From the sequence record NC_049340.1: a DNA stretch of 64,000 nt, one strand, 5' to 3'. Under the pieces are notes generated by a model that did not search any database, was not told the origin of the DNA, and saw nothing but the letters and a program-made list of their open reading frames with translations. A program made the position numbers and the translations under genes. Shown piece after piece: positions 6,893 to 32,348 of this stretch (its first letter is position 1; each line of letters starts with the position of its first letter).

Positions 6893-6944
6893 GTTTTGTA
6901 TATTTGTTGTATAAATGAGAATCATTAACGATGGCGAAGCCATC
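6877..6944 (+). promoter_or_regulatory. Sigma-A promoter plus conserved GATGG..CCATC leader hairpin (copy 1)
   Basis: TATATTTG 6899-6906; gatggc-gaa-gccatc 6930-6944. Confidence 0.7.
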
Positions 6945-6962
6945 TAGTTAAAAACATTAGAC

Positions 6963-7205
6963 ATGAGTAAGACAAAAATAGTAGTAGCAAACGAGAACAC
7001 ATTATGTTATATAATTCCTCAATTACCTAATAGTTTACAGGTTTTATCACCAAGCATTATAAGGGGTTCAACAATGCAAGATTTTGGGTCATATCCAATC
7101 GAAAATTACGAAGTTCGCTTGGCTACCAGCAAAGATTTTGAAACTTACAGAGTATGTGAAAATGGTTATAGAGAAGATGTTGAAAATTACGAATATAACA
7201 GATAA
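6963..7205 (+). CDS. Hypothetical protein, paralog of 7971..8228
   Basis: Shared K(I/L)VV..E(N/H)TL.YI.P..P and (V/I)RLA...DF motifs. Confidence 0.7.
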   Translation: MSKTKIVVANENTLCYIIPQLPNSLQVLSPSIIRGSTMQDFGSYPIENYEVRLATSKDFETYRVCENGYREDVENYEYNR

Positions 7206-7410
7206 TGTACATACTTATATCAATTAGTGGTAATGACTATAGAAGAGAAGTCCTAGTAAGGTATCTAAAAGAAAATCTAAACTGGTAGACCATATTAAAG
7301 AGAATGGTTATTATTTCAGTAAGAAACTTAACCGATACATAGATGATAAAAACACTAAAGATGGTGGTAGTGGTGTTGACTATGTAATAGAACAAATAGA
7401 AGAAATTTAA
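7205..7410 (+). CDS. Hypothetical protein (apparent 1-nt deletion near 7248)
   Basis: Adding one A in the aa run joins MYILISISGNDYRRE to SPSKVSKRKSKLVDHIKENG...EEI*. Confidence 0.45.
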
Positions 7411-7437
7411 ACAATTATTAATTATAAATACATACAA

Positions 7438-7704
7438 ATGAAAAAACGTTTATTAGTTATTTTTGCAATTATTGCAATGTCATTAACATCATGTACCGAT
7501 GCTACTCGTGCTAAATGGGGTGGTTATGGTTCTGAGTTCAAAGTTGAGTTAGTTAACTGTGATGGTACAATTACACACTCATGGATTAGTAGTGGTAAAG
7601 TATTAAGTGAGCAATCAAGTGATGGTTATTACTTCAATGATAAAGAAACTGGTAGGATTATTGAAGTTACTGGAACATTAATCATATCAAAATATAAAGA
7701 CTAA
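7438..7704 (+). CDS. Predicted lipoprotein
   Basis: Signal MKKRLLVIFAIIAMSLTS followed by a lipobox Cys. Confidence 0.7.
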   Translation: MKKRLLVIFAIIAMSLTSCTDATRAKWGGYGSEFKVELVNCDGTITHSWISSGKVLSEQSSDGYYFNDKETGRIIEVTGTLIISKYKD

Positions 7705-7708
7705 ATAA

Positions 7709-7882
7709 ATATTCCCGAAATGTCCGTGAGCAATCGAAGTACAAGATTGTGAATTAACCGACAGTAGCCTAGTGCGCAATAGGTGTGTAGTAAATGTAAG
7801 GAATATATAATAACACATGCTAGTGTAGTACTTAATTATCCAAGTACTTTCGAATGCACTATTGGAATAGAATAGGTGTTAT
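7709..7882 (+). ncRNA. Candidate structured non-coding RNA (two multi-stem domains)
   Basis: Nested stems: 7709-15/7800-06, 7721-24/7760-63, 7731-35/7745-49, 7768-71/7780-83; 7810-16/7876-82, 7821-27/7855-61, 7828-33/7842-47. Confidence 0.45.
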
Positions 7883-7946: not shown

Positions 7947-8288
7947 AATAGTCAAACAAAAAGAGATAACATGAACAACAATAAAGATTTCGATTTCCGT
8001 ATTAAATTAGTAGTAATAGATGAACATACTTTAGGTTATATCTTCCCTGAATATCCTGATGAATTTCATATACTAAGTAAGAATTGTGAATCACCATATA
8101 GAAGTGGTGATAAGTATGTTATAACTCACGAAAATATTAGATTGGCATGTGAACAAGATTTCGAAAATTTCTATACAGTTTTCGATGGTTACAATAATCC
8201 TGCTAGATATATTTACGATAACAAGTAAATAAATTTGCGTGGGAACTTTAAAAGTGTTATATTTGAATAGTCAAACAAAAAGAGATAA
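7933..8288 (+). repeat. 37-bp perfect direct repeat containing promoter and leader (7933-7969 and 8252-8288)
   Basis: aagtgttatatttgaatagtcaaacaaaaagagataa occurs twice, flanking one gene. Confidence 0.9.
7971..8228 (+). CDS. Hypothetical protein, paralog of 6963..7205
   Basis: ATG at 7971 after the leader; motifs shared with 6963. Confidence 0.7.
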   Translation: MNNNKDFDFRIKLVVIDEHTLGYIFPEYPDEFHILSKNCESPYRSGDKYVITHENIRLACEQDFENFYTVFDGYNNPARYIYDNK

Positions 8289-8291
8289 ATT

Positions 8292-8519
8292 ATGTTAACA
8301 GTTGAATTAGGTAATATAGGTTGCGAAAAACAAGCAAAGAAAATCAAAGAAAAATTACAAGGTAAAACTTACTTCAATTTTGAGGTTGATTATTGTGCAT
8401 ACATGGGTAATTATCCTGTATCAGTTTCTAGTGACATTAACAATAATAATAGTGGTAACGAATACACTTTAGAAGAATTTAAATATATGTTAATGTTCGT
8501 TATGGCATGTGAAATGTAA
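8292..8519 (+). CDS. Hypothetical protein
   Basis: 75-aa ORF after the repeated promoter. Confidence 0.65.
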   Translation: MLTVELGNIGCEKQAKKIKEKLQGKTYFNFEVDYCAYMGNYPVSVSSDINNNNSGNEYTLEEFKYMLMFVMACEM

Positions 8520-8539
8520 GAATAAATAAAAAATAATTA

Positions 8540-8579
8540 AAAAATCCCATTGTTATGTCAATGGGATTTTTTATATTTG
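8540..8579 (+). promoter_or_regulatory. Inverted repeat overlapping a sigma-A promoter
   Basis: aaaaatcccattg-N6-caatgggattttt; TATATTTG 8572-8579. Confidence 0.7.
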
Positions 8580-8602
8580 TAGAGTCAAAAGATAAGAACA
8601 TT

Positions 8603-11600
8603 ATGTTATATAAAAACAGTAATCAAGTAATACCACAAGAGGCAAGAAAAGATATCAATAATAAAATTCTTCACTTAATTGAGACAGGTGATTTGCAAGG
8701 GTTGAGTCGAGAAGATATTTATAATGCATATACAGGTGATGGTGGTTTACATGGGTTAGAGTTCAAAAATTACAATTCATTCTACGATTATACAGAGGCT
8801 AAGAAACAGGTTGAGAATGGTCAATTTTTTACGCCAGCAACTACTGCACAAGATGTAGTTGATACTTTAATGGTTCAACCAAGTGATTTAGTTGCAGACC
8901 TTACGTGTGGTCATGGTTCATTCTTCAATTACCTACCAACTCAATCAAATATTTACGGTAGTGATTTAGATAATAAAGCTGTAAGAGTTGCTAGATTTCT
9001 TTACCCAAAAGCAAATATAAAGAACCAAGACATTAGAGAATATGAACCAAATGTAAAGTTTGATTCAATCATAATCAACCCACCATTAATTTAAAGTTTG
9101 GTGATATGAGTTCTCAAATGTATGTTTGTCAAAAGTCTGCTGAGTTAATGAAACCACTTTCTTTGATGGCTTTAATTGTTCCTAAATCATTTTTGAATGA
9201 TGAAATGATTAATAAAAAGACATTGAGCGAATGAATGAGTATTTCAATTTCGTTGGTCAGTATGCGTTAAATCCGAAAGAATTTAAACAAATGGGTGTTG
9301 ATTATTTCGAGACAAAAGTAATGTTCTTCCAAAGAAAATCAGAATTTGTTGATGATGTTCCTTTTATTAATATCTACAATGAACGTGATTATATTAAGGC
9401 TAGTATAGGCGATTTAAGAGCAGTTAAATCAACTTTAAAGGCTAAGACCCTTTCAGAGATTAAAAGCGATGATTCTGACTTCTCATATAGAGTTAAGAAG
9501 TATTTATATGAGTTTAAAACACACAAAAACTTACAATACTATTCTTCAAAGGCTGAGGCGTTAATTGAAAAATTCAATACTCAAAATAAACCTGAGGGGA
9601 TGGAGTATAAAGAATGGGATAATATTAAATTAACCGAGGCTAAAGTATTAGCAACATTTAAGCGAGTTATGAAAAACGCTTATATAGTTGACCGTGATGT
9701 TATCCGAGTTGTTAAGCAGAACCATACGTTCAAAATCAAGCCATATAGCGGTAAAATGAAGCACGTAATTTCAAAAAAGGTATCAAACCCTCATATGAAT
9801 ATTTCACAGCTTGTAGCGTATCGTGGTGAGTTTGAAAAGTTCCTAACCGCATGTAAAGTTTTAAACTTAGATACTACAGAATTAACAAAGGTTGTTAACC
9901 GAAAGTATAAAGATTATTTACTACACAACGCAAGCATTAAGGATATACAACCTAGTAAAGAAATTAAACGTTTTGTAAATAGCTTTAAGTTTATTTCCAA
10001 AGGTAAAGTTTGTAAACTAACCAAAATTCAAAAAGAAGATATCGGTAAAGTTTTAACTAGAAAACACACACTACTTGGTTGGAGTATGGGTGGTGGTAAA
10101 AGCGTTGCTTTGTTGTGTATGATTAAATATATAAATAAACACAAATTATCTAAAAATGTTTTTGTGACTGCACCAGCAATTGCATTGGATTTAACATTAA
10201 AGAATTTTTTATCTCATAATGGTGTTGATTTTATAGAAATAAAAAACGCTAACCAACTTAAAAATATTAAAGATGGTAAAGTAGTTTTAATGACTTTGGG
10301 AAGACTTAGTATGTCTAAGGATTCTGTTAAAGAGTTTGTTAAATCAAAGAGTAACAAAGTTAGTATTTTGTTTGATGAGGTGGATGAAATAAAAAACAGA
10401 TTATCTAAACGTTCACGAGCAGTTATTAATGCTTTTCGTAGATGTCACCGAACATTTTGTTTTACTGGAACACCAACAAGAAACAACATAAATGAGATAT
10501 ATGCTATTTTAGAATTAATGTATAATAATTCACATAATATGATGTGTGAAGTGTCTTCTATTTATACACAAGACAAGAAGAGTAAAGAAATAAAAAACAA
10601 ACCAAATAATAAAAAACAATTACCGTTTGATGCATACTATGGGTTTGGTTTATTCAAGTCTTGTTTTTCACCATCAAAAACAACAGTATTTGGTATAAAG
10701 AAAGACACCCAAAATATATTTAATACTGATGAGTTAAAACGAATTGTAGAACGCACAGTTATTATTAGAAGTTCTGAGGAACTAATGGGTGATAAGAAAA
10801 TTATTAAATCACACTTTGTTCAACCAAATTTAGCGGAACGTGAATTACAGGAGACTATAATGAAAGAATTTCATCAAATATGTTATACATACTTTAGGTC
10901 AACTGGAAATAGTAGAAAGGAATCATATCTAAGAATCATCAGAATGATTAATTTATTGATTAAGAGTTGTACAGCACCACATTTAATGAATGATTGGAAC
11001 GGTCAAGGATTACCAACTAAATATTCAAAGGTTCTTAAAATGATTGGCGAAAGACCAAATGAACCAATTATGATTGGGTGTGTAGGTATACCAAGTACAC
11101 AAAGTTATTATGATGAAATAAAAAATAAGTATCCAAACAGACGTGTGTATTATGTTGATGGTACAATACCTTTTAAAAAAAGAAAACAAATAGTAGATGA
11201 ATTTAACAACTCAGATAATGCAATATTAGTAAGCAACCAAGCATCATTAAAATCAAGTGTTTCTATAGAGAAATGTAATACTGTTATAATACCATCTTTG
11301 CCATGGAATTATGCTTCGCTTTCACAATACTTCTATCGTGCAATTAGATTTGATTCTGAACATAAAACAGAGGTTCATTTAATTACATATACTGATAGTA
11401 TTGACTTAAATGTATTACAACTATTATTAAATAAAGAGAAGATTAATAATTTCATTAAAACTGGTGATGAATCAACAGATGAAGAAGTAAATGAAGAGTT
11501 TGGTGTTGATGGTGATGTATTAGGTAGTGTTATTGAAAAATATTACGATGAAGAGGGTGGTATGAGATTTATGTTAGGTTCTGAATCAAAAAGAGTGAGT

Positions 11601-11603
11601 TAA
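8603..11603 (+). CDS. N6-adenine DNA methyltransferase fused to an SNF2-like SF2 helicase (about 1000 aa; two apparent 1-nt deletions at 9086-87 and 9214-18)
   Basis: GQFFTP, DLTCGHG (motif I) and NPP(F); helicase GWSMGGGKS, LFDEVD, TGTP, QYFYRAIRF. Restoring one T and one A fuses ORFs 8555..9094 and 9231..11603. Confidence 0.8.
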
Positions 11604-11604
11604 T

Positions 11605-12371
11605 ATGAAAAATGATTTTATAATAGATAGGGTTGGTGAAAGATATTACACAAATCAAGGATATGAAATAGAAATAATAAGATATAATGGGTATTATGAT
11701 ATATCGGTTAAGTTTCTATCAAGTGGACATGTTGTTGAAACAACATATACATCAATAAAAAATGGAACTATAAAAAATTTGTTACATAAAACGGTAAAGG
11801 GTGTTGGTTGTTTTGGATATGGTGAATATAAATCTAGGAATAAAATATATGATACATGGTTTCATATATTAACTAGGTGTTATTGTGAAAAAACTCATAT
11901 AAAACAACAACATATATTGGATGTAGTGTTGATGATTATTGGCACAATTATCAAAAATTTGCTGAATGGGTGGATGTAGAATATACAAAAAAATGTATCA
12001 AAATTGATAATAAAATGTACCTTGATAAAGATTTGTTGGTTAAAAATAATAAGATTTATTCAAAAGATACATGTGTTTTTATACCAAATGATGTTAATGT
12101 TTTAATAACAAATAGACGTAACTTTAGAGGCTGTTTACCTATAGGTGTAACTACATCAAAAAATAGGAATAAATATAGAAGTCAGATAAATATATACGGA
12201 AAACGTATTGGTTTAGGGTATTTCGATACACCATTTGATGCATTTAATGCATATAAAGAAGCAAAAGAGAATCATATAAAAGACATTGCTAATAAATATA
12301 AAAATGAACCGTGGATGTTAGATAAATTGTATAATGCTCTTATGACATACGAGGTTGAAATAACGGATTAA
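11605..12371 (+). mobile_element. Free-standing HNH-type homing endonuclease with C-terminal AP2-like domain (apparent 1-nt deletion near 11908)
   Basis: Joined frame reads KQPTYIGCSVDDYWHNYQKFAEW; DKDLL..NKIYSKDTCVFIP..VN; AP2-like YRSQINIYGKRIGLGYFDTP..AF.AYK.AK. Confidence 0.75.
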
Positions 12372-12373
12372 TT

Positions 12374-12404
12374 TTTGTAGTTTAAAATATAAGTGTTATA
12401 TTTG
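12374..12404 (+). promoter_or_regulatory. Sigma-A promoter
   Basis: TTTG 12374-77, 19-nt spacer, TATATTTG 12397-12404. Confidence 0.75.
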
Positions 12405-12425
12405 TAGAGTAAAAATCGAAACAAT

Positions 12426-12707
12426 ATGCAAGTAGATATAAAAAATAGTAACGGTATGTACACATACATTTTAGAATGTTCAACAGGCACATGCGCTAAA
12501 TCACATTCAGAATGGATTGAAGTTATAGAAACACCATTAACGAAAGATGATATTGAATTTATGATTCTAGAGTCTAAAGATGATTGTGGTGATTATAAAG
12601 TATTTGGGTCTTATTTTAACTATTATCAATTATTCACACTACATGGTTGGTTATTAAAAAGAAAGCGTTCAATAACAGATATAAATCAGTTAAGAAATGA
12701 AGATTAA
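12426..12707 (+). CDS. Hypothetical protein
   Basis: 93-aa ORF after the promoter. Confidence 0.65.
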   Translation: MQVDIKNSNGMYTYILECSTGTCAKSHSEWIEVIETPLTKDDIEFMILESKDDCGDYKVFGSYFNYYQLFTLHGWLLKRKRSITDINQLRNED

Positions 12708-12873
12708 AAATATCAAATCAAATAAAAGATATTCAGCCTTGGGTACATGTGGTATGAGTAACGGTATTTTATTTGAGGGTGAATTAACAAGTATTGATAG
12801 TTGGGGTGCGTATCTTAAATGTGATAGGGTATTATACACCTATGTAATAAAGACAAACTAAAAGAAATTTAAT

Positions 12874-13710
12874 ATGGACATACTAAGTAAATTAAATTCA
12901 ATAAAAGTAGAAAACTCTTCAAGGATTCCAGTTGATTTATATGATAAACTAACAACATTTAGTGATGTTATGTTGAATGGAATTGACAATGTACAAAAGC
13001 ATTTAGATTACCTTAATGTATATGACCAATGTTCAGAAAAGTATTTTGATAAAACAATTAGTGACCTTGAATATAAAATAAAGTCCTTTAAGATAAACTT
13101 CATAACAGACTGTATTAATTCAATCGAAGCTAGATATTTTATCATGGTTAAGCGATTACACCATAGATATTCTTCATATTCTACTGATTTATTAAAGCAA
13201 TTTAAAAACGAGACACCAACCATTGAAAGTATCTTAGATATTGTATTTGAATATACAGAGGGTGTATCATTGGAAGAGTTCGAAAAGAAAAGAGCAAAAG
13301 AAAAGTTCTTTAATGAACTTGATGACCGTTGGCAAAAACCATTAGCAACATTTACAAAGAGTGGTGTTGTAACATTACCTGAGTATATATACATTCATAA
13401 TGATGGGTATATTCATTCTAATGGTCGTTTTAGAAGTTGTGATGTATATGATATAAAATTACTATATCGTGTATTAAATCTGTTCGAGAATGATTCCATT
13501 GAATTATGGGATGATAAACAAAATATAAATGAATTTGAATATGATAACTATGTTAATCCACTTGCTGGTAAAACAGTAATTGAGAATGATACGTTATTAT
13601 CCGAGTTCAACATAAGTAAAAAAGGAACAATTAAATTAAGATTCAAAGAAAAGGAAAATGCTAATAAGTTTTTTCACTTCTTTAACCTACACAAAACCAC
13701 AAATAGATAA
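12874..13710 (+). CDS. Hypothetical protein, paralog of 14009..14935
   Basis: N-terminal ILSKLNSIKVENSSR and C-terminal ISKKGTIKLRFK..NANKF match the paralog. Confidence 0.75.
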   Translation: MDILSKLNSIKVENSSRIPVDLYDKLTTFSDVMLNGIDNVQKHLDYLNVYDQCSEKYFDKTISDLEYKIKSFKINFITDCINSIEARYFIMVKRLHHRYSSYSTDLLKQFKNETPTIESILDIVFEYTEGVSLEEFEKKRAKEKFFNELDDRWQKPLATFTKSGVVTLPEYIYIHNDGYIHSNGRFRSCDVYDIKLLYRVLNLFENDSIELWDDKQNINEFEYDNYVNPLAGKTVIENDTLLSEFNISKKGTIKLRFKEKENANKFFHFFNLHKTTNR

Positions 13711-13711
13711 C

Positions 13712-13928
13712 ATGAAAAAAATTAGTATTACTTATCACATTATTAGTATTATCAACAGCATGTGACCCAATTACAGAGCATGGCAAAGAAATGCAAAAAA
13801 TGGAATTAAAGGAACGTCAACTGGAATACTTAGAAAAGTTATATCGTATAAAAAGTGACATAAACCACAAACTATTAATGAAAGAATTGGATAGTTTGGA
13901 AAATGATATTCTAAAAAAGTATAAATAA
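13712..13928 (+). CDS. Predicted lipoprotein (apparent extra A in run 13715-13721)
   Basis: Corrected frame: MKKLVLLITLLVLSTA-C-DPITEHGKEMQK...KKYK*. Confidence 0.55.
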
Positions 13929-13930
13929 TA

Positions 13931-13990
13931 TTGTGTATTAAAAATTCATTTCTTATATTTGTAGGGTAAAACGGTGATGGTTAAACCATC
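13931..13990 (+). promoter_or_regulatory. Sigma-A promoter plus GATGG..CCATC leader hairpin (copy 2)
   Basis: TTG 13931-33, 20-nt spacer, TATATTTG 13954-61; gatggt-taa-accatc 13976-13990. Confidence 0.7.
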
Positions 13991-14008
13991 CATTAAAAAC
14001 AAAATAAA

Positions 14009-14935
14009 ATGAGTTTATTAGACAAATTTAGTGCAGTTGAAGTAAAGAATGTTAATAGATTAAATGAAGAAGATTTAGAGTATGTTAACAAAAAAAGTTC
14101 TGAATATAAAAGAATCCTAGAATATAACAACAAATTACATTCAGCATTAAAGACCGTTCTTGATTCAAATATTGATGAATATAAAGAAATTTCATTCCAC
14201 ACAAAACCTTATCACACTTATGTACATAACAGCAATGATAGTTTAGGTTTAATTAGAAAAGATATATCGAACTTACATTACCATTATATTGGTGATATTG
14301 TTGGTTACTTTACTAAGAAGTATAATATTACTTGTGATGCTGAAAATTTCGAAATCATACCAAACTATAAGAGAAGCGATTTATATAACCACAAAGCGTA
14401 TCCTGAGTATTCTTATCACGGTTCAGAAAAGAGGTTCGAGAATATAGAAAATGTTGTTGTTGATTATAATGATATTATTGATTATTTATTCAAACACACA
14501 GACATGGTAAGTTTCGACCAACACAAAAAAGAGTCAAGTGTTGCATTATTAAAAGATATGTACCGTGCAGATTCACACCGTGCAGATATTAAGGTAGCAA
14601 AGAATGGTAGTGTACAAATGCCAACATTTATGTCATGTCCTGAGTATCGTAAATTCGAGAGTGAGAATACAAATAAAGTAACATCACTTAGTGTGGTACT
14701 TGAACAAGTTTATTATGAATGTGGTTCTATGTTCAACGATAAGCTATCACCAAGCGCATTTAAAGACACTTTTTGTGTTGGTAAACCATATAGCCCAAAT
14801 ATTTCTGAACAGCACTCAAAACACGTTGTTGGTGATGATATAGTAGAGTATTACCACTTAAACCAAAGCGGTGCTTTAAAAATCAAGTTCAGAAACGCTC
14901 AAATTAGTTCAAAGTTCATTAATAAAATTAAATAA
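14009..14935 (+). CDS. Hypothetical protein, paralog of 12874..13710
   Basis: N-terminal MSLLDKFSAVEVKNVNR and C-terminal LNQSGALKIKFRN..ISSKF. Confidence 0.75.
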   Translation: MSLLDKFSAVEVKNVNRLNEEDLEYVNKKSSEYKRILEYNNKLHSALKTVLDSNIDEYKEISFHTKPYHTYVHNSNDSLGLIRKDISNLHYHYIGDIVGYFTKKYNITCDAENFEIIPNYKRSDLYNHKAYPEYSYHGSEKRFENIENVVVDYNDIIDYLFKHTDMVSFDQHKKESSVALLKDMYRADSHRADIKVAKNGSVQMPTFMSCPEYRKFESENTNKVTSLSVVLEQVYYECGSMFNDKLSPSAFKDTFCVGKPYSPNISEQHSKHVVGDDIVEYYHLNQSGALKIKFRNAQISSKFINKIK

Positions 14936-23161: not shown

Positions 23162-26100
23162 ATGAGCGAAGACCGCAAAATACTTTTACCATCGGCATTA
23201 TCTACATACGAAAAAGAGCAACAACAGCAGTTAAATTTTGAGGATTTAGCACGTACTGATATGCACTTTAGATTGCGAACAGGTGCTGATATTCTTATTG
23301 AGGAAAACGGCATACACATACAAAATCCATTTAAGTTTTCACACACGGATATTTATAAATGGTCAGAGTCTCAGAATGAAAATATTGATGTTGTATTACA
23401 AAATTACAGTTCATATTTCGAAAAGGTAAAGGCTAGATATGATGTTGAAAAACGTCTTACTTATAGACCATATATCACTACAGATGGGTTTACAAATAAT
23501 TTAGATGTTAGTGGATTAACACAAGGTCAGAAAATAGATAAGATTTATCAATTCAATAAGGATAGAATTGATTTACTTAGAAAGACTGATGATAGTTTGG
23601 ATGCACAAGCAGAAATTGACCACCGTAGAAACAATATTTTCGAACTTCTATACCATAAACACGGAAAGGATTTAGATAACTTGTTATTGAAGTTATATGG
23701 TGATGATTTAGCAATTAGTAATCGTGTTACCATTCTACAGAATTATCGTGAGCGTGATGCTAAACCAAATCCAAAGAACCCTAGTGAGATTTTACCAGCT
23801 AACTATTCACATGCACAAAGAACATACACCATTGGTGAAATGATTGAAATATTACAATCACCAAAGTTAAATGAGCTTGATAAATCGGATAGGTTATTAG
23901 TTATACCTAACATAACAGGTAATCGTGTGGTTGGTGATATTGCATATGTTAATTGGAGTGGTATGCAGGTGTTTGATATTGACTTGAAATTTTCACCAAC
24001 ATTTATAGCAAATGGTTCTAGTGCTGGTGAAATTCGTGATATATTATTCGAGAAGTTAAAACACTATCCATGGTTTATGGGTATTACATTATCTTCGAGT
24101 GGTCGTGCATTGCACTTATATACCAAAGTATCAAAACCACATAACATATTTAAAACACCTGAGCATAATATTGATATTTCTAAGTATTGGTACAGAATGT
24201 CATATGTACAGAAGTATTGTGCAATATGTTACGTTTTATTTCATCATTGTGATATTGATGTTTATGATGAGAATGAGCGTAAAGAAAAGGTGGTTGATAC
24301 GGCAATGGCAAGGGTTCAACAAGGTATTGCAATGAACCATGACCCTAATGGAAAATGGAACAATAATTTTATTGATTTACCACCTCAATTATTTTACCAC
24401 TTACCACCTGAACAGGGTTTGAAAGATTCTGATTGGTTGGATTTACCACACGTAACAAATGCATTTAAGAATTGGTTTTATGATAATGCTGTTAATGATG
24501 AGGAAAATGAGGAAGTAACTCAGAGGGTTGGTAGTATGAAAATTATTGCTGATGATTCATATAAATTGGGTGATATTTCACAAATTGATATGGATTCTTT
24601 GGGCAAGGGTGAGAAGTATAGTACTCGTTGGCGTGTATGTAACACTCTTATTGCATCATATGGAGATACACCACAAGCAAAGGAATTAGCATATCATATT
24701 TTACAGGTTGGTAAAAGTTCATCTGAGTCTCAGGTTGATGCCTTTTTACGTTCTGCTGTAATGAACCGAAAGGAAGCTGATGTTTATATGATTAAACAAC
24801 TTAGAAAGTTAGGTTTACAGATTGCATTAGATGAGGAAACAACACAACAATTATCTGATGATAATATGGAACGTGTTCGATTTATGGTTGAGAAGTCAAA
24901 CTATGCATTTAGGCAACACATGCCTAATCATTTAGTTAATTTGGCTGATGGTGAGTATTTGGGTATGCGAATGAATCAGATTGTTAATTCATTCGACCAA
25001 TTTAAAGTTAATGTAATTGAATCTGCACCGAATACTGGAAAGACTGAATTTTTCAAAGCACTTGCACGTAAGAAAGCTGTTTGTTTAGTTATTCCATTTA
25101 CGTCTGTAATTGAATCTAAGGTTATTTCTGATGAGTCAATTTGTGAATTGTTTGATGCTTATTATGGTGATATTTCGGTATATGATATTAAGAAAGGGCG
25201 TAGTGCGGTAATGACGATTGATAAGTTTAGTAAGCTACCTAAGAGTAAGTATAAAATGTTTGATTACATTGCAATTGATGAATCACATTTATTATTTACA
25301 TCCACATATAGACTTCCAGTAGTATCAATGACAGTTGAGAATATTAGAACCAACTTACTAAAGGATGTTTCAATGGTTAAGAACTCAATGTCAAGTGTTA
25401 TGAGTGTTCAGAGTTTGTTGAATTTTGTTGAGCAAGAGGAAACAACAATTGAACTACCTAAGATAATTTTAATGACAGGTACTATTACTGCTGAGTTGGA
25501 TTATTTTAAACACTATGATATACTTAACTATATTAAGGTACAAAAGAAACACCCACACCATAAGAAAGCTGAATTTGTTTTATCTAAATCAGCACAAACT
25601 AGGGATTTATTAATTTTTAAGGAAATTTCTGAGGTTCTTGGTAGAGGTGGTAAAGTAATACATCCAACAAATAATGGTGATGGTTATGCAAATAAAGTTG
25701 TTGAATGTGTACAACACATACTAGGTAGAAAAGTTAAGTGGGAATATTATAAACGTGCAAATACTGATGAAACATTTTTAGAGCGTATTAACACAGATAC
25801 CACAGTAGATGATTTAGAACTATTATTTTGTTCTGATTATTTATCGGTTGGTATTGATATTAAAGATGTAGATGATTTTGAGTTTATATACTCTTCTGAT
25901 TTTACTGCTGAAAGTATTGAGCAGTTTAATAATAGACTACGTTCAACTAATATTAACAGTAAGATATTCTTTGATGTATTAGATGCTGATGGTCAACAAA
26001 AGCCTAATATTATGAACCTACAGCAAATTGAATATAAGGCGAATGCTGAATTTCAGAATATGATATCTGATGAGGAAACAATTGCCAAGATTCAACAACA

Positions 26101-27172
26101 TGTTGGTGCTAAGTCACAATACTATGCAGTAATTGGCGAAATGTTCTCAAAGTATTTTGTTCAGGATATGTTTGGTAATATTAAATATGTTAAATCAGCA
26201 TTCGAGATTGAACAATTTGAAAACGCATACAAGAACATTGCTAGGTCATTACTTTACATAAAGACTAGTATGGAATTGAAATATCAATATGAAGTAAGTG
26301 TATCATTCAAAGAAGAACTTTCCGAAAACGAAATTGAGAAGTTTAAAGAAATACAAAAGGTAGCTAAATCTGAATATGATTTACAGAAATCTAATAGTAT
26401 GTTACAGATTATTGACTTTGTTTCATCTGATTCTGTTTATGATGTAATTTCAAAAAGGGATTATAAATTATTAAAGATAAATGATGAACTTGAAGAAGAT
26501 GAAATAGGTTTACATTTGGGGTATAATTCTGATGAGGATTCATTTACAATATCATATAACAGAAAACATAAAGTTATGTTAGAAGAAAGTATGAAGATTG
26601 CGAGTAAGTTAAGGAAATTGTATTCACATAACACAGTAAAAGCAATTTTGGTTAGTTGTACATCACAGACTAGTGGCATTATTAGACGAATTGATGTATA
26701 CCGATATATGGATTTAATGAAGTTAATGTTTGTTGATAAAAAGCAAACGCTATCAATGAATACTGCTGAGTTATTATCAACTGCATACACATTTATATTT
26801 CCTAGTGAGGGTAAACAAAAAATTGAACGTTGGGAATATGAAGAAATGAAAATGCAAATGAAACATAAAATTGATGAAAGTGTTTTTAATATTGCTGAGA
26901 CTGAATTTAAATCAACTAGACGAAAGGAAAATGTTGATGGATTAATTAATAAGTTTGTTGATACATTATTCATTAAAAGAGTTGGTAGAGAAAATGTTAA
27001 TATTGAATTTAGAAAGATATTTCCATTTGATTCAGAAACAATAAATGAGCGTGTAAAACAGGACACAATATTCAATCAATTATTAAAAGATGATTATACT
27101 GAAATTGACCCTAATGAGGTGCATGATGTTTCATCAAATCACATAAATGATGATATACAATTTATGGTTTAA
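23162..27172 (+). CDS. Primase-like (VirE-N/BT4734-type) domain fused to an SF2 helicase
   Basis: WSGMQVFDIDLK..LSSSGRALHLY; Walker A SAPNTGKT, IAIDESH, LMTGT, LSVGIDI; 1336 aa. Confidence 0.65.
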   Translation: MSEDRKILLPSALSTYEKEQQQQLNFEDLARTDMHFRLRTGADILIEENGIHIQNPFKFSHTDIYKWSESQNENIDVVLQNYSSYFEKVKARYDVEKRLTYRPYITTDGFTNNLDVSGLTQGQKIDKIYQFNKDRIDLLRKTDDSLDAQAEIDHRRNNIFELLYHKHGKDLDNLLLKLYGDDLAISNRVTILQNYRERDAKPNPKNPSEILPANYSHAQRTYTIGEMIEILQSPKLNELDKSDRLLVIPNITGNRVVGDIAYVNWSGMQVFDIDLKFSPTFIANGSSAGEIRDILFEKLKHYPWFMGITLSSSGRALHLYTKVSKPHNIFKTPEHNIDISKYWYRMSYVQKYCAICYVLFHHCDIDVYDENERKEKVVDTAMARVQQGIAMNHDPNGKWNNNFIDLPPQLFYHLPPEQGLKDSDWLDLPHVTNAFKNWFYDNAVNDEENEEVTQRVGSMKIIADDSYKLGDISQIDMDSLGKGEKYSTRWRVCNTLIASYGDTPQAKELAYHILQVGKSSSESQVDAFLRSAVMNRKEADVYMIKQLRKLGLQIALDEETTQQLSDDNMERVRFMVEKSNYAFRQHMPNHLVNLADGEYLGMRMNQIVNSFDQFKVNVIESAPNTGKTEFFKALARKKAVCLVIPFTSVIESKVISDESICELFDAYYGDISVYDIKKGRSAVMTIDKFSKLPKSKYKMFDYIAIDESHLLFTSTYRLPVVSMTVENIRTNLLKDVSMVKNSMSSVMSVQSLLNFVEQEETTIELPKIILMTGTITAELDYFKHYDILNYIKVQKKHPHHKKAEFVLSKSAQTRDLLIFKEISEVLGRGGKVIHPTNNGDGYANKVVECVQHILGRKVKWEYYKRANTDETFLERINTDTTVDDLELLFCSDYLSVGIDIKDVDDFEFIYSSDFTAESIEQFNNRLRSTNINSKIFFDVLDADGQQKPNIMNLQQIEYKANAEFQNMISDEETIAKIQQHVGAKSQYYAVIGEMFSKYFVQDMFGNIKYVKSAFEIEQFENAYKNIARSLLYIKTSMELKYQYEVSVSFKEELSENEIEKFKEIQKVAKSEYDLQKSNSMLQIIDFVSSDSVYDVISKRDYKLLKINDELEEDEIGLHLGYNSDEDSFTISYNRKHKVMLEESMKIASKLRKLYSHNTVKAILVSCTSQTSGIIRRIDVYRYMDLMKLMFVDKKQTLSMNTAELLSTAYTFIFPSEGKQKIERWEYEEMKMQMKHKIDESVFNIAETEFKSTRRKENVDGLINKFVDTLFIKRVGRENVNIEFRKIFPFDSETINERVKQDTIFNQLLKDDYTEIDPNEVHDVSSNHINDDIQFMV

Positions 27173-30344: not shown

Positions 30345-32348
30345 ATGAAAGAAGATAACCACCCAAACACAGCATCCGATATGGAAACTATGACCAATGA
30401 ATTTGGTGTTCCTGAACAGGATGAAAAACTTGGAAAATTGAAAACCGATGTTTCGGAATCAAGAACTGTTAGTTCATATTCTCGTGAAGAGTTTATAACA
30501 GCATTTAAGAAGACTGTTGCATTTTTTAAAAATATCGAGGGTATTGATATTAATAGGATGCGAACACAATTCGAATATGTTAAAAGAACCGTAGATGCAT
30601 TTGGTGATGGTAGAGAAAGTGTAATTTTCATAGCACCAACTGGATTTGGTAAGTCTTTCTATGCGTATGCAATAACAAAGTTATTTGAGTTTTTAGATTC
30701 AGGTAATAGTTCATATATACTTACACCAAATAAGTTCCTACAGGAGCAATATGAAAAGGATATAAAAGGATTTGACCTAAGTACATACAAAATGTTAAAG
30801 GGTCAAGCAAACTATACATGTACGGTAAATAAAAAACCGTTTACAGAACGTGAGTGTGGTGATGATTCAGTTTCCAATGTTATTAATAGTGGGAAGTGGA
30901 AAGGTTGTGTAGGAATATGCCCATACATCCAAGAAAGAATTAAAGCAATTAGAGCAAAGACAACTGTATTTAACTATAACTATTGGTTAACAACATTAAA
31001 TAACGTATATCCAATATTAGGTGATAGTTCGCCATTTAAACCAAGGACATTAACAATATTTGATGAAACACATACATTAGGTAACATTGTTCAGGATATG
31101 TTTGCTGTTGAGTTTAGTTTGAATAGTATCATTAGACGTTCACGTGCATTCTCACAAATGTTAATTAACCAAAGTGGATGTGAACTAAATATTGTTGATG
31201 AACTGAATATGATTGTTGATGCATTCGAAAGTATTAATTCAAACATTGATGCTAATGAATATGTGTATGAAAAATTAATGCAATTATATAAAGGACTTAC
31301 ATCACTATTTAAAAAGTATGATACTGAATTGGGTAGACTTTTAGATAAGTTACCAACGGATTTAGATGATAAACCTATACTACAAGACGTACACAAAGAC
31401 TTAATTAAGTTTAATGAAACTATTATAGAGTGGAATGATAAACTTGGACAGTTAATTGATGTTTATGCTAAATTTGGTAAAGAAACCATTGTAGCATCAA
31501 TTGAAGAAATTACAGATGATAAAGTTAAAGTGATACCTGAGTTTGGTTCTATATCTAAGACTAGATTAAAGTTACAATGTACTAATGAAAGTGAGTTATG
31601 TAAAATGGCTGTACACGAAAAATCAGACTATAAAGTTTTCATGTCCGCTACATTAGGTGATATGGATGCATATGCTGAACAAACAGGTATTAAAAACTAT
31701 GCTAAATTAGAAGTGCCACAGATATTCAATTACGACAAATCACCAATATATAGTGTTACACCAATGCTATCTATGAACTATAGAAATAAGGCACAGAACA
31801 AACCTGCTATGGTTCAAAGAATCCTCAAAATTATTGACCATCACGAGGGTCAACGTGGATTAATCCACACAGGCAATTTTGAGTTGATGAGGGCGTTACA
31901 AGAAACTGGACACCCTAGAATAATTACATACACCAATTCGGATGAGAAATCAAAGATTTTAGATATCTTAAAGAATAGTGAAGATTGTGTAATTGCCGGG
32001 CCAAGTCTCGTAGAAGGTGTTGACCTTAAAGATGACCTATGTAGATTCATGGTGTTTATGAAAGTTCCGTTCCTTTCAATGGGTGATAGACTTACTAAAA
32101 AGAAAATGGAAATTTATCGTAAGTGGTATGGGTGGAATGCGATGTCAAATGTATTACAAGGACTTGGACGTGGTATTCGTAATGATAAAGATTGGTGTGT
32201 TTCATATTTACTAGACTCATCATTTCAATCATTTTTCCATAATAACCCAGCACCTAAATGGGTTGAGGATAGATTTAAATTAATGGAATCAACAAATATT
32301 GGTGTTGAGTATGACCCTGATGCAGAATTTGATAATATAGAATGGTAA
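30345..32348 (+). CDS. DinG/XPD-family SF2 helicase
   Basis: APTGFGKS, DETH, MSAT, EGVDL..DLCRFMVFMKVPF, QGLGRGIR; Fe-S-like Cys pattern. Confidence 0.85.
   Translation: MKEDNHPNTASDMETMTNEFGVPEQDEKLGKLKTDVSESRTVSSYSREEFITAFKKTVAFFKNIEGIDINRMRTQFEYVKRTVDAFGDGRESVIFIAPTGFGKSFYAYAITKLFEFLDSGNSSYILTPNKFLQEQYEKDIKGFDLSTYKMLKGQANYTCTVNKKPFTERECGDDSVSNVINSGKWKGCVGICPYIQERIKAIRAKTTVFNYNYWLTTLNNVYPILGDSSPFKPRTLTIFDETHTLGNIVQDMFAVEFSLNSIIRRSRAFSQMLINQSGCELNIVDELNMIVDAFESINSNIDANEYVYEKLMQLYKGLTSLFKKYDTELGRLLDKLPTDLDDKPILQDVHKDLIKFNETIIEWNDKLGQLIDVYAKFGKETIVASIEEITDDKVKVIPEFGSISKTRLKLQCTNESELCKMAVHEKSDYKVFMSATLGDMDAYAEQTGIKNYAKLEVPQIFNYDKSPIYSVTPMLSMNYRNKAQNKPAMVQRILKIIDHHEGQRGLIHTGNFELMRALQETGHPRIITYTNSDEKSKILDILKNSEDCVIAGPSLVEGVDLKDDLCRFMVFMKVPFLSMGDRLTKKKMEIYRKWYGWNAMSNVLQGLGRGIRNDKDWCVSYLLDSSFQSFFHNNPAPKWVEDRFKLMESTNIGVEYDPDAEFDNIEW

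Follow-up and report, generated by a model that had tools for sequence, protein, structure and literature searches.

A frameshift-split DarB-like methylase–helicase gene and its partner protein family in Tenacibaculum phage PTm1

The closest described relatives of the locus treated here are the DNA methylase-helicase dyads, which, in the sections of Iyer et al. 2017 (PMC5512222) that deal with them, combine an LPD36 (GXGU) region, an EcoKI/TaqI-like N6-adenine (N6A) methylase and a SWI2/SNF2 ATPase. In those sections a TP cap together with NPP(Y/F) is the hallmark of the dyad methylase, DarB of phage P1 is the archetype, and the class is characterized by being packaged in the virion or co-transferred with the DNA and by protection in cis (Iyer et al. 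2017, PMC5512222). The DNA considered here is a stretch of 64,000 nucleotides (the window) that corresponds to bases 62001-126000 of Tenacibaculum phage PTm1 (AP019524 / NC_049340). PTm1, which infects the fish pathogen T. maritimum, is a lytic jumbo phage; its genome of 225 kb has about 30% G+C, and the + strand carries nearly all of the genes. A sequence-only reading of positions 8603-14935, which proved correct in its coordinates and gene content, had described there a methyltransferase (MTase) fused to an SNF2 helicase and, downstream of it, two smaller partner proteins. On balance we favour the explanation that the locus holds a two-component module in decayed form, made up of a dyad of about 1000 amino acids (aa) and the product of open reading frame (ORF) 100, called the partner below.

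That the fusion is of the DarB kind, as the sequence-only reading had proposed, was supported by its domain order and its conserved motifs, and on these grounds it is a DarB-like methylase-helicase dyad, a type of protein that was already known. The pieces of the PTm1 gene cover phrog_24008 ('helicase') from end to end (positions 1-162 and 215-1005 of 1006). When P0214, an intact homologue of 1000 aa on a contig of a related jumbo phage, was used as the query, 141 proteins were returned. They vary remarkably little in length (985-1050 aa), are 35-63% identical over their full length and have their sources in flavobacterial phages, in Bacillota (Niallia, Paenibacillus, Clostridium botulinum), in Bacteroidota (Niabella, Chitinophaga) and in numerous phage-like contigs from metagenomes. 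The order of methylase and SNF2 motor is intact in all 141 and in phage pT24, and is split by frameshifts in PTm1. GxGGLHG, QFFTP, DLTCGxG, NPPF, GSGKT and DESDE are nearly invariant in the alignment, and this near-invariance of methylase and motor motifs argues that both activities are under selection. The gamma-class N6A methylase motifs FFTP, DLTCGHG and NPP are present in PTm1 and kept across 70 homologues, and the GDGG / GxGGLHG motif at dyad residues 45-51, which was compared with the GXGU of LPD36 by motif only, is nearly invariant as well. Among solved structures the motor is nearest to SsoRad54-like, Snf2, Ino80 and ISWI proteins, and the methylase to TaqI and StySJI-M. Scanned with PADLOC/NCBIfam-type models, the methylase was closest to the MAD2 methylase of MADS and to methylases of the type II or orphan kind, weak matches of the helicase were to DrmD, ZorD and BrxH, and none of the PADLOC models of defence systems fits the dyad locus.

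With DarB of P1 and P7 the dyad shares its domain order, a helical N-terminus with GxGG, a TP-cap/NPPF N6-adenine methylase, an ATPase of the SWI2/SNF2 clade, carriage by phages and plasmids, and weak matches to DarB-sized families among the PHROGs. DarB, however, is 2255 aa long, whereas the PTm1-type dyad has about 1000 aa and is without further effector domains; it is also accompanied by a partner of its own, about 300 aa in size and distinct from the Dar accessory proteins of P1. The gene was considered as an orthologue of P1 DarB and rejected as such, as tblastn at 1e-10 showed no direct similarity between the two. Type I and type III restriction-modification systems likewise join a methylase to a DNA translocase, and in such an arrangement a small separate subunit could give specificity; the difference is that the motor here belongs to the SNF2 clade and that a nuclease domain is absent. 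Scans with Pfam, PADLOC and NCBIfam and the fold searches with the partner found no nuclease, HsdS or TRD domain.

ORF-100 (14009..14935; the features of the PTm1 locus described here all lie on the + strand) encodes 308 aa with an N-terminal peptide, a helical hairpin and an alpha/beta C-domain that ends in an NG.IKIKF hairpin. Co-occurrence of the partner genes with the fusion elsewhere had been set beforehand as a test of the sequence-only reading, and the ORF-100 family was found to adjoin a methylase-SNF2 gene in 15 informative contexts, in phages as well as plasmids. These range from flavobacterial jumbo phages, gut phages and a Clostridium phage to plasmids of Bacillus, Lysinibacillus and Vescimonas. 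Twelve fetched loci in the tblastn table hold the adjoining pair (PTm1, pT24, L027, L018, L020, L022, L006, L028, L029, L030, L031 and L032), and so do three further gut-phage scaffolds; two other contigs with a partner were too short for a neighbourhood call. In the collection of 50,697 phage records that was searched by tblastn with an E cut-off of 1e-10, every record holding a complete dyad has a partner beside it.

The arrangement of the pair varies. The partner lies directly upstream of the approximately 1000-aa dyad in the gut-phage scaffolds MT837361, MT836551, MT837091 and MT836373, in Clostridium phage D-1873, in a 79-kb plasmid of B. subtilis (NZ_CP123978), in the Vescimonas plasmid pMM35_02 and in the metagenomic contigs L018, L020 and L022, with an overlap of the partner stop and the dyad start in L020. 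In L032 (8001-10427) a fused, 808-aa form of the partner with an N-terminal extension stands upstream of the dyad. The partner is downstream in PTm1, in L027 with one small gene between, and in pT24, where it is BPT24_030, with three genes between, one of them GmrSD_N. Across these contexts the partners are only 18-35% identical, the hosts belong to two phyla and lineages differ in which of the two genes comes first, so that inherited synteny is not the explanation of the linkage. ORF-100 is therefore most likely, as far as gene context can tell, an accessory subunit dedicated to the dyad, with the dyad itself or its DNA substrate as the binding target; it is probably the working partner of a dyad-type gene and would bind it physically, perhaps as a specificity subunit. 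Plasmid pBsph of L. sphaericus (L029, NC_010381.1) was also observed to carry two partners in tandem (6941-7810 and 8006-8917), directly upstream of a 998-aa dyad.

Dyad and partner have neighbours of the anti-restriction type, among them SSB, DUF932, an ArdC-like zincin peptidase, toxin-antitoxin pairs and GmrSD_N. From these neighbours and the precedent of P1 DarB we infer a role in restriction evasion. GmrSD_N (DUF262) genes stand near dyad and partner in pT24 (L002, 11895-12731) and in the unrelated phage contig L018 (3520-4641), and PhdYeFM-ParE and RelB-Zeta toxin-antitoxin pairs lie just downstream of the overlapping pair in L020 (8425-11023), which suggests that the L020 element is a plasmid or phage-plasmid. 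In pT24, ABC-ATPase genes are found upstream; genes of this kind are said to have been linked by Iyer and colleagues in 2021 to a predicted DNA acyl-modification system.

The MTase-helicase of about 1000 aa that the sequence-only reading claimed does exist as a gene family; in PTm1 and the isolate PTm5, however, the gene consists of three ORFs and a single 1000-aa ORF is not present. The first fragment (8603..9094, 163 aa) has an LPD36-like N-terminus (GDGG), the FFTP cap, the S-adenosylmethionine-binding motif and NPP, matches N6_Mtase and MTS, and ends at a premature stop as ...IIINPPLI*. The second (9088..9234, 48 aa) is in the middle frame and collinear with residues ~163-210 of the pT24 protein, and tblastn joins all three pieces. 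The third (9231..11603, 790 aa) is in the third frame, has its own ATG, and contains a linker domain and a SWI2/SNF2-type helicase (GGGKS, DEVDE, Helicase_C) with Pfam matches to SNF2-related (SNF2-rel_dom), DEAD, ResIII and Helicase_C. Compared with pT24 there are two -1 shifts due to 1-nt deletions. One lies inside the NPPF codons (9086..9088), where PTm1 has TT and its relatives TTT (an extra T after 9085); the other (9214..9218) reduces A6 to A5 (an extra A after 9213 in the relatives). BPT24_034 of pT24 is one gene of 1001 aa that is open through both sites as ...NPPFNLDFGG...NKQDIERMNEFFNF.

The same stretch was compared with Logan contigs from four public runs over window positions 8500-12500 (4001 letters). 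A 45-kb contig of run X1 spans the entire compared stretch with 55 substitutions, and contigs of runs X2 and X3, the latter a seawater metagenome, span the critical part of the dyad gene. All three of these independent runs, at 98-99% identity, have the extra T after 9085 and the extra A after 9213, and with the two bases inserted in silico PTm1 has an ORF of exactly 1000 aa in which NPPFNLKF is whole again. Since X1, X2, X3 and pT24 are all intact, the intact fusion is the ancestral and common state, from which PTm1 and PTm5 depart. If the breaks are real, the stop falls within catalytic motif IV and leaves a methylase fragment that should be inactive, and the 790-aa linker-helicase may still be produced in PTm1. 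With the methylase cut inside the NPPF motif, DNA methylation by the module as deposited is unlikely, and the active methylating module that had been proposed is not supported for PTm1, in contrast to its intact relatives. Programmed -1 frameshifting was considered and rejected, as in the relatives the frame is simply open through the two sites. A slippery sequence did not fit either: the second PTm1 site (T AAA AAG) is weakly so and the first (CCA TTA ATT) is not.

ORF-100 belongs to a family that also includes ORF-098 (12874..13710, 278 aa). The two proteins exist with the N- and C-terminal motifs that the sequence-only reading had quoted for them; they are collinear and 19% identical (BLASTP E 6e-4), and the relationship is also seen by way of the pT24 orthologue (BLASTP E 7e-5). 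Orthologues in pT24 are 32% identical to ORF-100 (E 2e-56) and 30% identical to ORF-098 (E 2e-20), the latter having been retrieved as a partial locus. A profile built from three members of the family and searched against 1.84 billion proteins gave 200 representatives at E<=1e-3, of which 22 reach E<=1e-10, and recovered both PTm1 proteins. Most members have 270-320 aa. The signature, which extends over proteins of ~270-340 aa, is M.LL.KF..V.V.N..R at the N-terminus and NG...I.F....F at the C-terminus; ORF-100 conforms to it and ORF-098 carries the same motifs. Among 207 collected members assigned by BLAST, 199 went with ORF-100 and 8 with ORF-098, and the structures of the two clades matched in BFVD with E 9e-9 and TM 0.56-0.62. 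ORF-098 is thus a true but ancient and distant paralogue of ORF-100.

Searches with single proteins had a shorter reach. A word-index search with ORF-100 alone found only itself, the related-locus search with single proteins gave no match, and neither did a pattern search of IMG/VR for the gut-phage scaffold. The C-terminal 270 positions of phrog_27491 were matched by ORF-100 (E 1.6e-22), and no PHROG was matched by ORF-098. In contrast to ORF-100, phrog_27491 models a longer form of 722 aa whose extra N-terminal region weakly resembles a primase family. Long partners of 731-911 aa were also seen (P0065, P0098, P0111 and P0148), with an N-terminal extension of ~450 aa; the extension has weak similarity to the 'primase' phrog_19458 and to phrog_6744.

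The clade of ORF-098 keeps other company. In 5/5 contexts outside PTm1 (pT24, L023, L026, L034 and L035) its members stand directly after a DinG/XPD-like helicase of 700-736 aa with ResIII and Helicase_C_2; the five phages are related to each other, which makes the contexts less independent. PTm1 also has a DinG/XPD-like helicase of 667 aa (30345..32348, + strand), the counterpart of the neighbour of ORF-098 orthologues in the relatives, and here the two genes are 17 kb apart. Given these neighbours ORF-098 looks relocated and is unlikely to be a second partner of the fusion. Of the "duplicated" partner genes of the sequence-only reading, ORF-100 was thus confirmed in its link to the dyad, but ORF-098 was not, and the family as a whole is one that pairs, by its gene contexts, with two different superfamily 2 (SF2) helicases. 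An SprT-like metallopeptidase gene directly follows the ORF-098-like gene in L023 (9223-11050, together with ART-PolyVal genes), L035 (3903-4715) and pT24 (L005, 5849-7735). Another helicase gene of the window, PTm1_ORF-117 (23162-27172, 1336 aa), is very large and intact, an example of a long ORF without breaks.

An AlphaFold2 (AF2) model of ORF-100 based on 128 homologues had a predicted local distance difference test (pLDDT) value of 91 and a predicted template modelling (pTM) value of 0.86. It consists of a short conserved N-terminal peptide, a helical hairpin of 85 residues and an alpha/beta domain that ends in a beta-hairpin and a helix; folded alone, the C-domain had a pLDDT of 89. The sole meaningful neighbours of the model in BFVD were members of its own family, including the pT24 orthologue of ORF-098. 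Foldseek against the PDB found nothing for either the entire model or the C-domain, a hidden Markov model (HMM) of the family had no match at E<=1 among PDB sequences, and the Pfam, NCBIfam and PADLOC models did not match the partner. With the wide VIA-align search the hairpin resembled generic coiled coils (Z<=7) and the last ~110 residues gave weak ACT/RRM-like matches of the ferredoxin type (Z<=5.1), and the fold searches showed no similarity to HsdS or TRD folds. Such matches are generic and uninformative on function. The nearly invariant residues of the partner are K6, R17, F101, Y105, N287, F294 and F303, and a conserved acidic, His or Cys set or other catalytic-looking residues were not seen in the alignment. 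From its conserved positions the partner is read as a putative non-enzymatic adaptor.

One lead leads to DUF4942 (PF13708), a family without known function. The look-alike clusters of the ESM Atlas (ORF-100, 0.90; ORF-098, 0.97) have DUF4942 in 15-30% of their members at TM 0.5-0.7, and the Atlas also points to longer DUF4942 proteins, some of them fused to MTS methylases. Bona fide members of DUF4942 were taken from E. coli Sakai and CFT073, K-12 being without one. Alignment A3 compared with ECs_1409 of E. coli by hhalign gave a probability of only 9% (E 0.0035) over 73 collinear C-terminal columns, within which the FKxG...I.F motif of the two lines up. The partner and DUF4942 are alike in size (280-309 aa), in the C-terminal 'FK(N/K)G...I.F' hairpin motif and, for ECs_1409, in an anti-restriction neighbourhood. 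They differ in that the Pfam model of DUF4942 fails on ORF-098 and ORF-100; it also had no match in the PTm1 genome (E<=10) or in three partner-carrying plasmids, and among 128 members of the partner family it matched one, with E 0.012. A kinship between the partner and DUF4942 is plausible, as a lead only. ECs_1409 itself (O157 Sakai, L043, 1451944-1456696, 280 aa) is the last gene in a row of antirestriction, RadC and CbeA-CbtA genes at the end of SpLE1, and it is annotated as a 'restriction methylase' despite being without a methylase domain in its 280 aa.

Between the dyad and the two family members lies the HNH gene that the sequence-only reading had noted as an insertion, and it was found to be split itself. 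It encodes an HNH-AP2 homing endonuclease (11605..12371), is an insertion relative to pT24 and L027, and has a frame break near 11907. Its halves (11605-11979 and 11970-12371) both match HNH endonuclease PHROGs, and there is also a match to AP2. In this gene run X1 differs by three indels, an additional C after 11907, two additional A after 11986 and the loss of one base at 12076, which do not sum to one clean frame. An intact-looking HNH_3-AP2 gene was observed after the dyad of L018.

Sigma-A promoters of Bacteroidota have the consensus TTTG at -33 and TAnnTTTG at -7. Boxes of the sequence TATATTTG, a -7 element of this Bacteroidota type, number 22 on the + strand of the window and 4 on its - strand, and lie mostly 20-55 nt upstream of ORFs (examples on the + strand are at 2969, 5625, 6899, 8258, 8572, 12397, 13954, 30113, 37340 and 46250). 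TTTG is usually found ~20 nt upstream of the box, which sometimes stands directly after a hairpin. By their sequence the boxes look like the phage's set of host-type promoters; a scan for the sigma-70 consensus was uninformative in the window, with 46 sites found for 50 expected. One box (8572..8579) lies 24 nt before the ATG at 8603, so that the promoter proposed ahead of the fusion has a promoter-like counterpart, and it abuts a terminator-like hairpin of 15 pairs with a T-run (8538..8573) that closes the upstream unit. Further boxes lie at 12397..12404, ahead of a unit of ORF-096, ORF-097 and ORF-098 (before 12426), and at 13954..13961, ahead of ORF-100 (14009). With a box of its own for each, the dyad, ORF-096 to ORF-098 and ORF-100 appear to be separately promoted, as three units in place of a single operon. 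Host-type promoters would be compatible with early expression of the dyad.

In the explanation that we favour, component 1 of the intact module would join an LPD36-like N-terminus, a gamma-class N6-adenine methylase and a SWI2/SNF2 motor in the domain logic of DarB, and component 2 would be ORF-100, with its helical hairpin and alpha/beta domain, which stands beside the dyad almost everywhere that the dyad occurs. In intact relatives the proteins would be synthesized early from host-type promoters, the SNF2 motor would move along the DNA of the incoming element while the methylase marks adenines, these marks would blunt host restriction, and the partner would load, target or regulate the motor. 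ORF-098 would be a distant paralogue that normally serves a DinG/XPD-like helicase and was moved here by rearrangement, and the HNH-AP2 gene a degenerate homing-endonuclease insertion. Several observations weigh against this account. P1 DarB was not among the 12 records that the 1000-aa protein matched in the tblastn search, and the DarB-like PHROG matched the dyad over 55 residues only, with E 9e-4; the functional analogy therefore rests on domain architecture. A DinG-like helicase without a methylase is also paired with the family, whose role may accordingly concern helicases generally and not methylation, and in one contig (P0016, L017) a partner homologue was found with no dyad within 8 kb. 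In addition, the frameshifts fall in short homopolymers and the two isolates are from the same laboratory, which makes an error in the deposit conceivable.

That last point can be carried further, to the proposal that the breaks of the dyad and of the HNH gene are all errors of sequencing or assembly and that PTm1 encodes an intact, active dyad of 1000 aa. The three losses are of single bases, two of them in homopolymers (T3 and A6), PTm1 and PTm5 are 100% identical across 6.5 kb around the locus, and the frame is intact in the three independent runs, all of which would agree with such an error. However, other long ORFs in the same 50 kb (3957, 4011 and 2004 nt) are unbroken, which excludes errors in homopolymers at an overall rate of three per 2.8 kb; the breaks cluster within 2.8 kb in two dispensable genes, as real decay predicts, and T2 in place of T3 would be an unusual error on most platforms. 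We therefore hold an error to be possible and somewhat doubtful, and regard it as fairly likely that the two frameshifts in the dyad gene represent real decay.

The same breaks bear on the proposal that PTm1 has an active early module of three proteins, with ORF-098 and ORF-100 as a duplicated pair of specificity or adaptor subunits that serve a single methylase-helicase. Both family members do lie within 3.3 kb downstream of the dyad, and the tandem pair of pBsph demonstrates that duplicated partners occur, but the dyad is broken in PTm1 and PTm5, separate promoter-like boxes and the HNH insertion come between the genes, and the clade of ORF-098 elsewhere follows its own helicase, often with the SprT-like gene next to it; we consider this proposal unlikely. 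It is about equally improbable, in our estimate, that dyad and partner form a defence or exclusion system of the element, similar to restriction-modification, DISARM or BREX, or an epigenetic marker for its own replication, packaging or transcription. The nearest relatives of the methylase and the helicase given above would suit such a function, as would the location of the module in islands rich in toxin-antitoxin pairs and GmrSD_N, whereas the lack of a nuclease or other effector domain in dyad and partner, the failure of the PADLOC system models, the carriage by lytic jumbo phages and the SSB, DUF932 and ArdC-like zincin neighbours on plasmids, which are typical of anti-defence regions, speak against it.

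The decayed two-component module may be one instance of something wider. More tentatively, the family of ~300-aa proteins, at the fringe of DUF4942, could accompany the SF2 motors of mobile elements generally and obligately, and the compact dyad with its family member could be a widespread and undescribed two-gene anti-restriction system; the family may then load DarB-like dyads onto entering DNA or target them to it, and in one clade do the same for DinG-like helicases. The dyad itself is known, and the partner family appears to be undescribed in the literature searched. If this holds true, it would be a two-gene system of phages and plasmids in Bacillota and Bacteroidota and would give the first functional handle on the DUF4942 proteins of enterobacterial islands. 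DarB-type dyads are among the commonest predicted counter-restriction devices, and an accessory protein suggests that the dyad does not act alone. A linked partner that is conserved from marine jumbo phages to Bacillus plasmids makes for a simple, clonable two-gene system and, as the gene in PTm1 is probably dead, PTm1 and pT24 provide a natural pair of a broken and an intact copy for the comparison of methylomes and host ranges.

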